A DNA stretch of 64,000 nt from Saccharolobus solfataricus P2 (GCF_000007005.1 NC_002754.1), one strand, 5' to 3'; numbered from the stretch's first letter, positions 7,604 through 12,389 are shown. Notes: generated from the letters alone by a model not told the origin. Made by a program: numbers and translations.

Positions 7604-8347
7604 GTGAAGATTAGGGTTGATATTATAGGTTTAAAAGGTGGTGTCGGGAAGACAACAATAGCGTTGAATACTGCATTATATCTTTCCAAGAGATATAAGG
7701 TTTTATATATTGATAAGGATCTGCTTTCAATGGGGTCTTTAATTTTAGGATTTAATGGCCTTGGTTTTAATAAAGCAATAGTAGAAGGTTTAGGCAATGA
7801 ACAATATGAGTATAAGGTTAATAATAACTTAACGTTATTCAAGTTATATAGTGATCCAGTAAACGAGAGAGAGTTACAGCATAAGGTTAAAGGCATGGGT
7901 GAAAAAGCTGAAAGAGCCTACGTTGATGTTGTATCGAAGGGCTATGATGTTATCATAGTAGATTACGGTAGGATTTTCAGAACTAATGATCCATTAGTGT
8001 ATGACGAATATGAAATGTTTAAGAAAAATTTCCCTGACTATACGATAGCTGCAGCAGGAATTACTGACGCCATTAGAAATGATGTTACAGATGTTGTAAA
8101 ATATTTTCTAGATACAATAAATAGAATTAAAGCCAAACCCCTCGCTTTCGTAATTAACATGGTACCTCAAATAGGTGATATTCAGAAAGAAATTAATCAA
8201 ATAGTTAGAGAAATTAGTGAAGTTGTAAAATGTGATATACTTACTATTCCCTTTAACGAGAAGTTAGTACAATATGCCAATATGGGAGAAGTAGAAGAAA
8301 TGCAAAAAGTGGGAAAGTTAATAGAGCGAATTTTATCTAATGGGTAA
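7604..8347 (+). CDS. MinD/ParA-family P-loop ATPase
   Basis: Deviant Walker A KGGVGKTT, YIDKD, IIVDYG, FVINMV. Confidence 0.85.
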   Translation: MKIRVDIIGLKGGVGKTTIALNTALYLSKRYKVLYIDKDLLSMGSLILGFNGLGFNKAIVEGLGNEQYEYKVNNNLTLFKLYSDPVNERELQHKVKGMGEKAERAYVDVVSKGYDVIIVDYGRIFRTNDPLVYDEYEMFKKNFPDYTIAAAGITDAIRNDVTDVVKYFLDTINRIKAKPLAFVINMVPQIGDIQKEINQIVREISEVVKCDILTIPFNEKLVQYANMGEVEEMQKVGKLIERILSNG

Positions 8348-8575
8348 TAGATCTTTTTAAGCTAGTTTACAAGTTTTTTACAAGAGAACGTCTATCCTTT
8401 TGATGCTGAATACTCTAAGCATAAGTGGTTTTTTCCAAATATTTACTTATACAATACATAAAAGTTGCATAAAAACTATTTTAGTTAAACTATCCGCATC
8501 CTCTACTAGAAAACGTTCATCGGGATATAAGAAAAAAATTGTTTATATGTATTTTAAAAAAAAAAAGAACATACT

Positions 8576-10654
8576 TTACTCTTTAGCCGTATTTTTCTTA
8601 ACTGTAGGGATAATAGATATTAATATAATAATTAGTATGAATGCTATTACAATAGCAGGTATTCCGTACACTTGGTATAACGTATATTTTCCCACGTAAT
8701 TAACTAGGTAGTTAACTACAGTTTCCCCTGGTGTTAATTTGACGTAATTTAATGGTATTGTGATGTTTTTGACGTATGTCTGATTACTATAGTAATAGAA
8801 CATTGATATCTGAAATACAGTATTCTTTGTGACATGTATGGTAAAAGGCATTGCTATGGTTTCGTTTGGTAGTATTTGTGAGATTACGTAGAATGGTGGT
8901 GTTATTGCAGTACCGTTGGGTTTTATAAGGATGTATATATTGTTGGTGTTTTGGTTTCCGGTGTTTTGTATGTATAGTATTAGTGTGGCTGTATATGTTC
9001 CAGTTGTTGATCTAGTTATATTGATGAATTGGTATGTTGCATTCAACCTGACTGATATAGGTAACACTGATTTAGTATAATTTAATGGTATTGTGATGTT
9101 GCTAGTATATGATTGGTTACTATAGTAATAGAACATGGTTATTTGAACCAGTGCGCTATTTGGTGTGCGTAAAGTGAATGGGATTGCTATGGTTTCGTTT
9201 GGTAGTATTTGTGAGATTACGTAGAATGGTGGTGTTATTGCAGTACCGTTGGGTTTTATAAGGATGTATATATTGTTGGCGTTTTGGTTTCCGGTGTTTT
9301 GTATGTATAGTATTAGTGTGGCTGTATATGTTCCAGTTGTTGATCTAGTTATATTGATGAATTGGTATGTTGCATTCAACCTGACGAATGGGACTTCGTA
9401 AACTTTCTGCCAGTAAGAAAACACGCTATTGCCAGAATAAAAGGTAATGTGAACAAGGTTAGGTTTTATAGTGGCAGGATACAAGACATTTCCTTTAGGA
9501 GATAGTTTTAGTATCTTTACAGCGTCTTGTCCAAACTGAACTGTTATATTATATAGCGTTATGTTATCACGATTAGATATGTTAATGTTACCGTTATTCC
9601 ACGCTACACTTATTGGATATACTATAGGAAAATAATAACTGCCTAAAGTTACGTTCTTAAGACCTAATGGTGTGTAGAAGAAAGCATAAATCTTGAGTGA
9701 AACATTTGAATTGGCATAGAAGGATAATATGAAATTTACAGCACTATTTGAAGCTAAATGTGGAATAGTTAACATCTTCATAGTATTATTATAGTTGGCA
9801 ATTATGGTGAGGTTGCTTATTGGAAGGGTGTCTTTATTTACTATTGAGACATTAAAGTTATTATAACCCGGATAAACGACTCCATTAGGAGTTCGAACAT
9901 TTGCATATAGTGTTGATATTGAAGTATTTACGTTAGTTTCTAAAACGAGTTGCCTAACATAGTAGAGGTTATAGGGTGTTAAAAACCGTATAGTTAATGG
10001 AATATTTAAATGATAAATCGGAATATCTTCAAATGGGACAAATAGCTCCACTGATATGTCCTTACTCCCGTTAACGTAAGACAAACTAACGTTTTTCATA
10101 AAATATGGGGATAAGATAGAGCCATTGTAGAGTGGAGATGGTGTGTTAATTCGAAAGATAACTTCTTGGAAACCTTGTATTAAGCTTGAATTTAATAGTT
10201 TAATACTAAAGTTATAAATACCATAGTAAGGCAAAGTAAATGAGGTATTATAAGATACATTACCCCCATTTTCAGTGATTAATGACAACATTACTGGGAA
10301 ATCTAACTGATTAGGAAGACTCGAGCTAACTATAGTAATGTTAAATTGTATGTTATATTGTTGCACTTGAGAGGATAAGGGTAAAATGTCTTCTACATAA
10401 TGTCCTTCGGTAGCGTTTAGAATTCCTTGAGGTAAAAGTATCTTTGCAATTAGGGCATAAGCGTTTATCTTAGTAGAATTTAAAAACGTAATCAAGTTTA
10501 CATTTATCGTTGTAAGATTATCCAAGGTGGGGATTGTCTTCCAGTTAGCTGTAATGAAGTATGAAAAAGGTGGTGTTGTAGATGAGGAATTTGAGAATCC
10601 AGATAACATTAGTGGGAAGAGCACTAGAAGTATTAAGACAATTGATTTATACAT
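8576..10654 (-). CDS. Large secreted, C-terminally anchored surface glycoprotein with a duplicated 111-aa beta-rich (CARDB/NEW3-like) domain
   Basis: N-terminal signal peptide, many NxS/T sequons, C-terminal TM helix followed by a basic tail, internal repeat. Confidence 0.8.
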   Translation of the reverse strand: MYKSIVLILLVLFPLMLSGFSNSSSTTPPFSYFITANWKTIPTLDNLTTINVNLITFLNSTKINAYALIAKILLPQGILNATEGHYVEDILPLSSQVQQYNIQFNITIVSSSLPNQLDFPVMLSLITENGGNVSYNTSFTLPYYGIYNFSIKLLNSSLIQGFQEVIFRINTPSPLYNGSILSPYFMKNVSLSYVNGSKDISVELFVPFEDIPIYHLNIPLTIRFLTPYNLYYVRQLVLETNVNTSISTLYANVRTPNGVVYPGYNNFNVSIVNKDTLPISNLTIIANYNNTMKMLTIPHLASNSAVNFILSFYANSNVSLKIYAFFYTPLGLKNVTLGSYYFPIVYPISVAWNNGNINISNRDNITLYNITVQFGQDAVKILKLSPKGNVLYPATIKPNLVHITFYSGNSVFSYWQKVYEVPFVRLNATYQFINITRSTTGTYTATLILYIQNTGNQNANNIYILIKPNGTAITPPFYVISQILPNETIAIPFTLRTPNSALVQITMFYYYSNQSYTSNITIPLNYTKSVLPISVRLNATYQFINITRSTTGTYTATLILYIQNTGNQNTNNIYILIKPNGTAITPPFYVISQILPNETIAMPFTIHVTKNTVFQISMFYYYSNQTYVKNITIPLNYVKLTPGETVVNYLVNYVGKYTLYQVYGIPAIVIAFILIIILISIIPTVKKNTAKE
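8850..9385. repeat. Near-perfect 203-bp direct repeat (8850-9052 / 9183-9385)
   Basis: Offset of 333 bp (111 codons) with one mismatch seen; weaker similarity extends to about 8745/9078. Confidence 0.9.
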
Positions 10655-10664
10655 CTCATATCAC

Positions 10665-11120
10665 CTACTCCTCAAAATCCTTCAATATCCATCCTTGATA
10701 TCCATGAATTTCTAGTTCTTTACAAGCTGAGACAGATTTCGCTTCACCTATAGTAATGGAAACATTAGGGATAGTCTTATTTTCACACAGATTCACTACT
10801 CCATTGAGATCGAGCTGCGAAATATCATTAATTAGAAGGATGATTTTCACATCCTTTCTTCTTAGTTCCTTTATCTTTTTAATATTCTCTATATGAAAAT
10901 TAAGGTATGTTAGAGTTGATTCTTCGTAAATAAATATCAATCTTATTTCTCTCTCTAGATCCAAGTAAAACGGAATTTTAATTCCGTTAATTTCCACATT
11001 TTTCCTTGCACTAATCACTATCTGATCTAATTTTTTAACCATTTCCATTAAATAATCATTAATTAAATCATCTTCTATTAACTCATTTTTTGAAACTAAG
11101 ATTTTATCCATTTTTCCCAC
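10665..11120 (-). CDS. Hypothetical cytoplasmic protein, middle gene of the GT2 operon
   Basis: Abuts the GT2 stop (11121) and lies 10 nt before the surface protein; normal composition. Confidence 0.7.
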   Translation of the reverse strand: MGKMDKILVSKNELIEDDLINDYLMEMVKKLDQIVISARKNVEINGIKIPFYLDLEREIRLIFIYEESTLTYLNFHIENIKKIKELRRKDVKIILLINDISQLDLNGVVNLCENKTIPNVSITIGEAKSVSACKELEIHGYQGWILKDFEE

Positions 11121-12389
11121 CTAACCCAAATAGCTACTTCCCCTCCATTCGGAAACACCGTAATGGGTGATTGCTGCATATATAAACATGGGGAATATTA
11201 CGAATAAACCGAGAATGCCTAGTGTAATAAGATCAACGAAGGATATTTTATCTGGGAGTTTAAGGTTCAAGATTCCAAAAGATATTTTCATACTTAAGTA
11301 AAGACCAAAAATAAAGATAAGGAGCGAATATAATATTATAGGTATGTTAAATCCATAATAGGCTAAATAACTCCAAGTCAATGCAGTGGGATTTCCAGGA
11401 ACTAAGAGCGTGTCTATTAATGCCAAAGCAAATGAAAATGGAGCTAATAGATATGTTAACATATGAAATCTATATTTTCCGGGCATTTTGAAAAATAAGC
11501 CACTCCTCATTTCCTTAATTAGGTAAAGATAACCGCTTCTAGCCCATCTTAACTGCTGGTTGAGGAATTTTAAAAACGTAGGTTGGGCCGCTGATTTAGC
11601 CACTGCCGTAGCTTGATAGACTGTCTTATAACCATTCATATTTGCGTAATAAGTCAGTGCTTTATCGTCTGCAGCAATTAGTTTTCTCTTTCCGTAAGTC
11701 TCGTGATTGAAATGCCTTATAGTCTCTAGTAGATAACTTCTTCTGTAAGCGGCAATCTTTCCATCAATCACATTTAACGTTCCATTTAACGCTCTAACAA
11801 CAATATCCCTACTATACTCTATTATTTGTCCAAACAAATAGGGAATTCTGCCATCAGTTCTGAATAATACTGGTCTCCCTTGAACTCCAGCTACCTTAGG
11901 GTCCGCAAACGGTTTAACGATTTCATTAATAGTATTATCTTCCATAATCGTATCACTATCTAACTGAACTATTATATCTCCAATTGCGTTTAACCAACCT
12001 ATGATTAATGCACCGCGTTTACCAACCCTTCTACTAAGGCTTATAACCTTAGCACCATACTTTTTGGATATATCCACTACTTCCTTTCTCTTATCATCGT
12101 GGACTACTATTATCTCATCTGGTTTATTTTTTGCAACTGATCTAAGACATTTTTCAAAAATCTCAAGATTCTCACCGTACTCTGGAACTATTGCACTTAC
12201 TTTTACCTTATCTCTACTTAAACCACTGATATAAGGTTTATAGCTTTTAGAGAAATGGCGCAATAAAAACTGTCTAAACAAGAAGAATATTGCAAAATTC
12301 ACTGGAAAATATATGAAGACACCGTATTCAAGCATATACAGCACGTTTTCTAATTCGTATAGCATAATCTCTAATGTTATCAATGCCAA
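11121..12389 (-). CDS. Processive membrane GT2, hyaluronan/chitin-synthase-like
   Basis: N-terminal TM, LDSDT, ADDKALT (compare GDDRxLT), NQQLRW (QxxRW), several C-terminal TMs. Confidence 0.85.

Follow-up and report, generated by a model that had tools for sequence, protein, structure and literature searches.

The described systems that come closest to the locus treated here, a three-gene operon of the thermoacidophilic archaeon Saccharolobus solfataricus P2 encoding a family 2 glycosyltransferase (GT2), a small protein and a large surface protein, are membrane-bound synthases. Class I hyaluronan synthases (HAS), such as the Chlorella virus enzyme (CvHAS; PDB 7sp6, 7sp7 and 8snc) and HasA, combine an N-terminal transmembrane (TM) helix, a GT-A domain with the DxD, (G/A)DD(R/K) and QxxRW motifs, a C-terminal bundle of TM helices and a W-x-T-R motif. 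They need no partner proteins, and the hasA gene is paired with hasB. NodC carries the same motifs and makes only short oligosaccharides. In bacterial cellulose systems, the synthase BcsA is accompanied by the C-anchored protein BcsB and the MinD-like ATPase BcsQ. The PgaC-PgaD and IcaA-IcaD pairs consist of a GT2 synthase and an adjoining small accessory gene, the product of which is a small membrane protein. To our knowledge, the synthesis and export of extracellular polysaccharides in archaea are largely unknown, and the Sulfolobus literature that was found describes sugar compositions and candidate glycosyltransferase clusters and names no export route.

The operon lies in a 64,000-nucleotide stretch of the S. 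solfataricus P2 genome (GCF_000007005.1, NC_002754.1), which is called the window below and from the first letter of which all positions in it are counted. The genes for the GT2 (11,121–12,389; 422 amino acids from a TTG at 12,389), the small protein (10,665–11,120; 151 amino acids from a GTG) and the large surface protein (8576–10,654; 692 amino acids) follow one another on the minus strand. The gene for an ATPase of the ParA/MinD superfamily (7604–8347, plus strand; 247 amino acids) converges on them. The coordinates of these four open reading frames (ORFs) come from an earlier, sequence-only reading of the window, and all four were recovered there. As no more than about 10 nt separates one minus-strand gene from the next, the tight operon that this reading had described was confirmed.

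We consider it rather likely that the three genes make up a Sulfolobales-specific module for synthase-dependent glycan production that includes two new partner proteins. The enzyme class is known, whereas the set of partners and the archaeal setting are new. The sequence-only reading had called the system uncharacterized, and this agrees with the literature that was searched by name and by SSO locus tags (which were guessed), where no study of the module genes was found.

Conservation of the Module

Loci containing the GT2 gene were collected from species-representative genomes and from metagenomes; complete genomes and long contigs were added by looking up identical proteins, which supplied the cultured Sulfolobales that the scan of representative genomes had not returned, though not Acidianus. 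They were searched with hidden Markov models of the GT2, small and large protein families, and the gene contexts were compared within 8–10 kb. Nineteen loci with a GT2 at least 49% identical to that of the window were counted (the window, L001, L002, L003, L006, L039–L042 and L050–L059 in our numbering); they belong to Saccharolobus, Sulfurisphaera, Sulfodiicoccus, Stygiolobus and uncultured Sulfolobaceae.

The small gene adjoins the GT2 gene in every one of these Sulfolobales-clade loci (19/19). The large gene was found within a few kb of the GT2 gene in 17 of them, the two exceptions being short contigs (4.1 and 2.9 kb) that break off next to the GT2 gene. The order of the genes is not fixed. 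The GT2, small and large genes stand on one strand in the window, L001, L002, L041, L042 and L057; the large gene is placed divergently upstream of the GT2-small pair in L003, L039, L050–L053, L055, L056 and L059; and looser arrangements are present in L040 and L006. The partner proteins have diverged to about 20–30% identity, yet the adjacency has been kept, and the pairwise identities of the GT2 and the large protein co-vary. Among the fetched loci, neither the small nor the large partner was seen without the GT2. Because the adjacency survives both the rearrangement of gene order and the divergence of the partners to 20–30% identity, there is good evidence that the GT2, the small protein and the large protein form a functional unit.

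The coupling of the GT2 to a small protein and an anchored surface protein, which had been proposed for the window, thus holds across several genera and in shuffled gene order. The same proposal had included the ATPase and named the synteny of all four genes as its check. The three-gene part passed this comparison, whereas the ATPase was present at only 3 of the 19 loci (see below).

Some of the collected loci deserve separate mention. L002 and L006 both come from the metagenome-assembled genome (MAG) of Sulfolobus sp. UBA167, which seems to contain two complete, divergent modules that fall into different subclades of the GT2 tree; this could reflect either real paralogy or a mixed bin. In L003, from a Sulfolobaceae MAG, the GT2 (8004–9424) is split into ORFs of 294 and 176 amino acids, which is a frameshift or an assembly error. 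No GT2 from S. islandicus or S. acidocaldarius was among the matches listed, as judged from hit lists and not from whole-genome searches.

The GT2 Synthase

By its sequence, the GT2 is a compact membrane synthase of the HAS/NodC/chitin synthase group, in which homology indicates an N-terminal TM helix, a GT-A domain on the cytoplasmic side and a bundle of TM helices at the C-terminus. This assignment, which had already been made in the sequence-only reading, is supported by matches in Pfam, NCBIfam and the PDB and by a comparison of profiles. The protein matches the GT2 families of Pfam, its best NCBIfam models are NodC (92 bits) and PgaC (70 bits), and its best PDB match is CvHAS, with an E value of 8e-17 when the single sequence was used and an identity of about 25%. 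When a profile of the 22-member GT2 family was compared with CvHAS, an E value of 8e-37 (130 bits) was obtained, with profile positions 22–411 matched to CvHAS residues 49–458. The alignment covers nearly the whole protein: it spans the first TM helix, the catalytic part and the membrane region at the C-terminus, and its last profile position falls on the WGTR motif of CvHAS. In size, the window GT2 is close to streptococcal HasA. Hydropathy indicates TM segments at residues 19–43, 310–332, 342–376 and 380–412. The three C-terminal ones align with the TM region of CvHAS and may form a translocation path.

Three motifs had been described as close to those of hyaluronan and chitin synthases, and all are present and align with their counterparts in CvHAS. 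The first is LDSDT (11,949–11,963, minus strand; residues 143–147), the DxD motif for nucleotide-sugar and metal binding, which aligns with IDSDT of CvHAS; in the alignment of 22 family sequences, S145 and D146 are invariant, and D144 is nearly so. The second is ADDKALT (11,652–11,672, minus strand; residues 240–246), the equivalent of the GDDR/TED motif of the catalytic base, which aligns with GDDRRLT and in which D241 and D242 are invariant. The lysine of ADDK is found in the subclade of Saccharolobus, Acidianus, Sulfurisphaera and Metallosphaera, and the remaining members have an arginine in its place. The third is NQQLRW (11,544–11,561, minus strand; residues 277–282), the Q(Q/R)xRW motif of GT2 enzymes of the HAS, NodC and cellulose synthase type, which aligns with QQTRW and in which Q278, Q279, R281 and W282 are invariant. 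Since the core residues are invariant across the 22 sequences, the three motifs are not chance matches. A fourth element, EWRG (11,139–11,150, minus strand; residues 414–417), is the local variant of a family W-L-T-R motif. In the profile alignment, the consensus WLTR of the family falls exactly on WGTR of CvHAS (residues 455–458), and W415 is invariant.

The likeness to the other synthases is more limited. NodC is the best-scoring curated model and has a similar length and the same motifs, but the score is far below its cut-off, no nod genes accompany the archaeal locus, and NodC works without an extracellular partner. The second-best NCBIfam model is PgaC; here too the score is far under the cut-off, and no deacetylase or porin genes are found at the archaeal locus. 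BcsA appeared in the GT2 profile search with a marginal E value of about 1e-6 to 1e-7. The Pfam scan gave no match to a PilZ domain in the GT2, which ends at the W motif. In the databases, these proteins are labeled “hyaluronan synthase”, “NodC”, “N-acetylglucosaminyltransferase” or “hypothetical”.

Relation to Dehydrogenase-Linked Synthases

A maximum-likelihood tree places the module-linked GT2s in a single clade (support 100/100). When the tree was rooted at its midpoint, this clade was nested among archaeal GT2s that are linked to a dehydrogenase. The sister GT2s, from Bathyarchaeota and unassigned metagenome contigs, are 31–44% identical to that of the window and lack both partners. At 11 loci, a gene of the UDP-glucose/GDP-mannose dehydrogenase family lies directly 5′ of the sister-clade GT2 gene on the same strand, as hasA is paired with hasB. 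Such pairs were recorded at L004 (4086–4979), L005 (7034–7882) and L048 (7251–8000), further ones at L049, L060–L063, L065, L066 and L072, and pairs also at L014, L015, L017 and L077. The archaeal dehydrogenases, of 250–297 amino acids, contain the N-terminal and central domains; the C-terminal domain that usually follows had no match. The same pairing was found at four loci with distant GT2s of candidate phyla radiation bacteria, which are about 26–30% identical to that of the window.

By analogy, the wider GT2 family looks like a pair of the hasB-hasA type. The Sulfolobales differ in that no dehydrogenase is linked to their GT2, and no dehydrogenase homologue was detected within the 64-kb window. 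As the sister enzymes are paired with a dehydrogenase and none is present in the window, the substrate may differ between the clades. Read from the tree and the gene contexts, the Sulfolobales branch appears to have lost the dehydrogenase linkage and to have gained its two partners once. The possession of two conserved partners also sets the archaeal module apart from HAS.

The Partner Proteins

The small protein had been regarded as an orphan. This was wrong, as its family adjoins every Sulfolobales-clade copy of the GT2, and a profile search of 1.8 billion representatives found about 20 full-length relatives. Most of them carry an N-terminal CxxC...CxxC zinc ribbon, which has been lost from the Saccharolobus proteins. 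No Pfam family was found for the small protein, and the zinc ribbon is the only domain that could be recognized. A match to L7Ae was rejected, as its 17 bits are below the cut-off and the topology of the model differs.

An AlphaFold2 model of the small protein, made with an 18-sequence alignment, reached a mean predicted local distance difference test score (pLDDT) of 79 and has an alpha-beta-beta-beta-alpha-beta core. The best Foldseek matches of this model were the PD-(D/E)xK nucleases SfsA, Bax1 and NucS; they are weak, with E values of 2e-3 or higher and TM-scores of 0.34–0.41. Nuclease activity was considered and rejected: the catalytic aspartate is replaced by proline or serine in Saccharolobus, there is no conserved lysine and no conserved triad, and among 18 members of the family no residue is invariant apart from the start methionine. 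The model is therefore read as a putative nuclease-like fold without nuclease chemistry. Most members have neither a TM segment nor a signal sequence. The orthologue of Sulfodiicoccus has an added C-terminal TM segment, which fits an action of the small protein at the membrane. By its sequence, the small protein is cytoplasmic, and its conserved adjacency suggests that it probably serves the synthase at the membrane as a regulator or scaffold. An adjoining small accessory gene is a feature shared with the PgaC-PgaD and IcaA-IcaD pairs; however, PgaD and IcaD are membrane proteins, whereas the archaeal accessory protein is soluble and combines a zinc ribbon with a nuclease-like fold.

The large protein of 692 amino acids begins with a hydrophobic stretch resembling a signal peptide and has a TM segment near its C-terminus, with basic residues after it. 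Charged residues are very scarce, and 34 NxS/T sequons were counted, compared with 13 ± 3 (maximum 24) in 2000 shuffles of its composition. An AlphaFold model from a 10-sequence alignment (pLDDT 74) is all-beta, with about six or seven sandwich domains, a helix at residues 646–658 and the TM helix. These features bear out the secreted, C-anchored beta glycoprotein that had been predicted. Judged from sequence and model, the large protein is extracellular and anchored at its C-terminus, and the sequons predict that it is N-glycosylated.

A likeness to BcsB had also been suggested, and this could not be upheld in sequence or fold. None of the 10 members of the large-protein family matched BcsB in Pfam. 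The family profile found nothing in the PDB, with no BcsB chain at E ≤ 10. The top 50 Foldseek matches of the model were strings of generic Ig- or macroglobulin-like domains with TM-scores of at most 0.26, and BcsB was not among them. No Pfam family was matched above threshold; one member of the family has a sub-threshold match to CARDB. The analogy with BcsA-BcsB is thus confined to the layout, in which the gene of a membrane GT2 adjoins that of a large extracytoplasmic protein anchored by one TM helix at its C-terminus. It does not extend to the components, since the likeness of the GT2 to BcsA is marginal, the large protein is all-beta and has no BcsB match, and the ATPase of the window is neither BcsQ nor linked to the module.

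The large gene contains a tandem duplication of a 333-nt (111-amino acid) unit, at 8745–9077 and 9078–9410 on the minus strand. The two units are identical at 89 of 111 amino acids, and a core of 217 nt is 97% identical. The duplication adds one beta-sandwich unit of 111 residues; it is absent from orthologues of 581 amino acids and present in the other orthologues of 692. Both forms occur within S. shibatae. The two units are more alike within a strain than orthologous units are between strains (NQN/NQN in the window, DQY/DQY in protein P0053), and this suggests gene conversion or repeated duplication of the units.

Proposed Function of the Module and Alternatives

In the mechanism proposed for the three-gene module, the GT2 would use uridine diphosphate (UDP)-sugars at the cytoplasmic face, most likely UDP-N-acetylglucosamine (UDP-GlcNAc) and possibly a second sugar. 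It would build a beta-linked chain, probably containing GlcNAc, and pass it through its own membrane domain. The zinc-ribbon, nuclease-fold protein would act on the synthase from the cytoplasmic side, probably as its regulator or scaffold at the membrane. The large protein, tethered by its C-terminal helix, probably receives, guides or retains the product under the surface layer (S-layer) or at the cell surface, so that its role outside the membrane may be that of a guide, a tether or an acceptor.

Several observations weigh against glycan production of this kind. The window GT2 and its Saccharolobus subclade read W-R-G-S at the position of the W-x-T-R motif of HAS, and W-R, not W-x-T-R, is found throughout the subclade of Saccharolobus, Sulfurisphaera and Metallosphaera. 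About 110 residues that follow WGTR in CvHAS, including further TM segments, are missing from the window GT2. The equivalog cut-offs of NodC, PgaC and CelA were all missed by a wide margin, with 92 bits against 550 for NodC (TIGR04242), 69.7 against 422.3 for PgaC/IcaA (TIGR03937) and 17.2 against 699.1 for BcsA (CelA, TIGR03030). NodC, an enzyme of similar size with the same motifs, produces no more than short oligosaccharides. The UDP-sugar dehydrogenase with which the sister GT2s are paired is missing from the window. Finally, the roles given to the partners rest on location and adjacency, and the two models come from alignments of 10 and 18 sequences (pLDDT 74 and 79).

A bolder extension of the mechanism is possible, and it is offered tentatively. 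The module could be the first archaeal machine for synthase-dependent glycan export, in which a minimal HAS-like enzyme is docked to a stalk, a long multi-domain glycoprotein, via the C-terminal helix of the latter, and a zinc-ribbon protein with a disabled nuclease fold serves as a gate. The stalk would carry or tether the growing chain on its way through the space below the S-layer. In a variant of this model, the chain would be attached to the stalk protein, and the product would be an archaeal proteoglycan. If the export machine were real, the dehydrogenase-linked sister clade of Bathyarchaeota would produce a hyaluronan-like polymer containing uronic acid.

The most serious alternative is that the GT2 does not export a polymer. 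It could instead make a short oligosaccharide as NodC does, attach a single sugar or a few to a membrane lipid in the manner of GT21 or HpnI, or build a glycan on the large protein. In that case, the large protein would accept the glycan or benefit from it, for example as an adhesin with special glycosylation, and would not guide a secreted polymer. The size of 414–422 amino acids and the best NCBIfam model are both NodC-like, the last TM helices of CvHAS are missing, and the large protein is exceptionally rich in sequons. Furthermore, the GT2 matches Pfam Glyco_transf_21 with an E value of 2.7e-12 and HpnI with 1e-6, and the GT21 and HpnI families have motifs of the QxxRW type and transfer single sugars. 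However, the likeness to HAS (130 bits by profile) is much stronger than that to GT21 or HpnI, and it continues through the membrane domain to WGTR. A core role in lipid or N-glycan synthesis would also sit poorly with the seemingly patchy distribution, given that the matches listed include no GT2 from S. islandicus or S. acidocaldarius. It is established, moreover, that N-glycosylation at NxS/T uses AglB and not a GT2 of the HAS type. Taken together, these points make a non-exporting enzyme a rather unlikely explanation, though one to be reckoned with, and synthase-dependent glycan production is preferred.

It could also be argued that the adjacency has no functional meaning and that the GT2, small and large genes are independent genes that travel together, given that the partners have no recognizable family or known link to glycan synthesis. 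This is very improbable. The adjacency is found in 17 to 19 of the 19 loci across genera, in spite of rearranged order and strand and of partners that are only about 20–30% identical, and neither partner was seen without the GT2 among the fetched loci.

With synthase-dependent glycan production as the preferred reading, the module is of moderate to good relevance for archaeal cell-surface biology. Being compact, conserved and genetically tractable, it is a concrete candidate for archaeal glycan export. It ties archaeal genes to the lineage of hyaluronan and chitin synthases, and it gives a testable context to two families of accessory proteins of no known function.

The Convergent ATPase

The convergent arrangement of the ATPase gene was confirmed. 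The protein carries the deviant Walker A motif GLKGGVGKTT at residues 9–18 and matches CbiA (38.9 bits) and AAA_31 in Pfam, features that assign it by sequence to the ParA/MinD superfamily. Its PDB matches are generic P-loop proteins. The scores for BcsQ fell short of the cut-offs, with 16.5 bits against 21.3 for Pfam CBP_BcsQ (PF06564) and 19.2 against 157.85 for TIGR03371, where the match is restricted to the P-loop (residues 4–39). The score for archaeal MinD (TIGR01969) was 16.9 against 201.75, and the ATPase is therefore not a MinD orthologue.

The ATPase gene adjoins the operon at three of the 19 loci, all from Saccharolobus, namely the window, S. shibatae (L041) and Sulfolobus sp. E5-1-F (L042), the GT2s of which are at least 90% identical. 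The remaining 16 loci lack it. At the S. shibatae locus, the ATPase gene and the operon have an IS605-type element between them, and in the window the two are separated by a 228-nt spacer containing T-tracts of the ATPase gene itself. Orthologues of the ATPase were found in S. islandicus (87% identical), S. tengchongensis (63% and 54%) and a Sulfolobaceae MAG (51%). Within 8 kb of these orthologues, neither the GT2 nor the large gene was found, and the contexts are unrelated. Judged by these gene contexts and model scores, the ATPase is a neighbor and not a part of the module, and the sequence-only reading, which had counted it as a component of the system and had itself offered its failure to co-occur elsewhere as grounds for refutation, does not hold in this respect. 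That the ATPase is a BcsQ-like part that positions or activates the synthase complex, as its convergence on the operon in three genomes and a weak CBP_BcsQ match might suggest, is hardly credible and is largely refuted by synteny, since those genomes are close relatives in which a shared gene order is little informative, the gene has a T-rich terminator region of its own, and orthologues at 87%, 63% and 51% identity stand in unrelated neighborhoods.

Two further observations concern the ATPase family. In S. tengchongensis (L045), two ATPase paralogues (8001–8747 and 12,521–13,264) are separated by 4.5 kb and have a HEPN/nucleotidyltransferase pair between them. An ORF of 91 amino acids follows the ATPase gene of S. 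islandicus.

Gene Starts, Operon Signals and Flanking Elements

The true start of the GT2 is most likely the ATG at 12,365 (M9, minus strand), which gives 414 amino acids, and not the TTG at 12,389. Orthologues begin at this position, and a TATA-like box, TTTATAA (12,394–12,400, minus strand), is situated 32 nt upstream. The box and the ATG would fit a near-leaderless archaeal transcript, a start predicted from reading the sequence. For the small gene, the likely start is the ATG at 11,111 (minus strand; 148 amino acids), on the basis of protein P0073. A run of 11 T residues (8556–8566, minus strand), 10 nt past the stop codon of the large gene, is likely to be the archaeal terminator of the operon. 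A scan for sigma-70 promoters and intrinsic terminators was discarded, as its counts were the same as in shuffled sequences and such a scan is not applicable to archaea.

Two additional ORFs, at 7534–7896 (minus strand; 120 amino acids) and 8400–8699 (plus strand; 99 amino acids), overlap the ATPase gene and the large gene at its 3′ end. The 99-amino acid ORF had no Pfam match, and the two are probably not genes.

The block had been described as flanked by relics of insertion sequences (IS), and this proved correct. Two degenerate copies of an IS with DUF4322 are present in direct orientation on the plus strand, one on the left at about 6025–7150 and one on the right at about 12,850–13,800. 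Segments of the two copies are 77–91% identical, and their reading frames are broken. A composite transposon that brought in the block was considered and rejected, as the same gene order occurs without the IS copies in S. shibatae (L041) and Sulfolobus sp. E5-1-F (L042); in the latter, no left copy intervenes between the xdhC and ATPase genes. The relics are insertions specific to the lineage and are incidental to the module. A plasmid origin was rejected, as neither megablast of the block nor tblastn of the ATPase gave a match among plasmids, and so was a viral origin, as no relative of the GT2 was found among the viral contigs searched.

A separate fragment of a DDE transposase lies at 15,243–15,932 of the window. 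Beyond an amino-acid permease gene and xdhC-like genes, a second GT2 of a soluble type (324 amino acids) is encoded at 2643–3617 on the plus strand, and it is found at the same relative position in Sulfolobus sp. E5-1-F.

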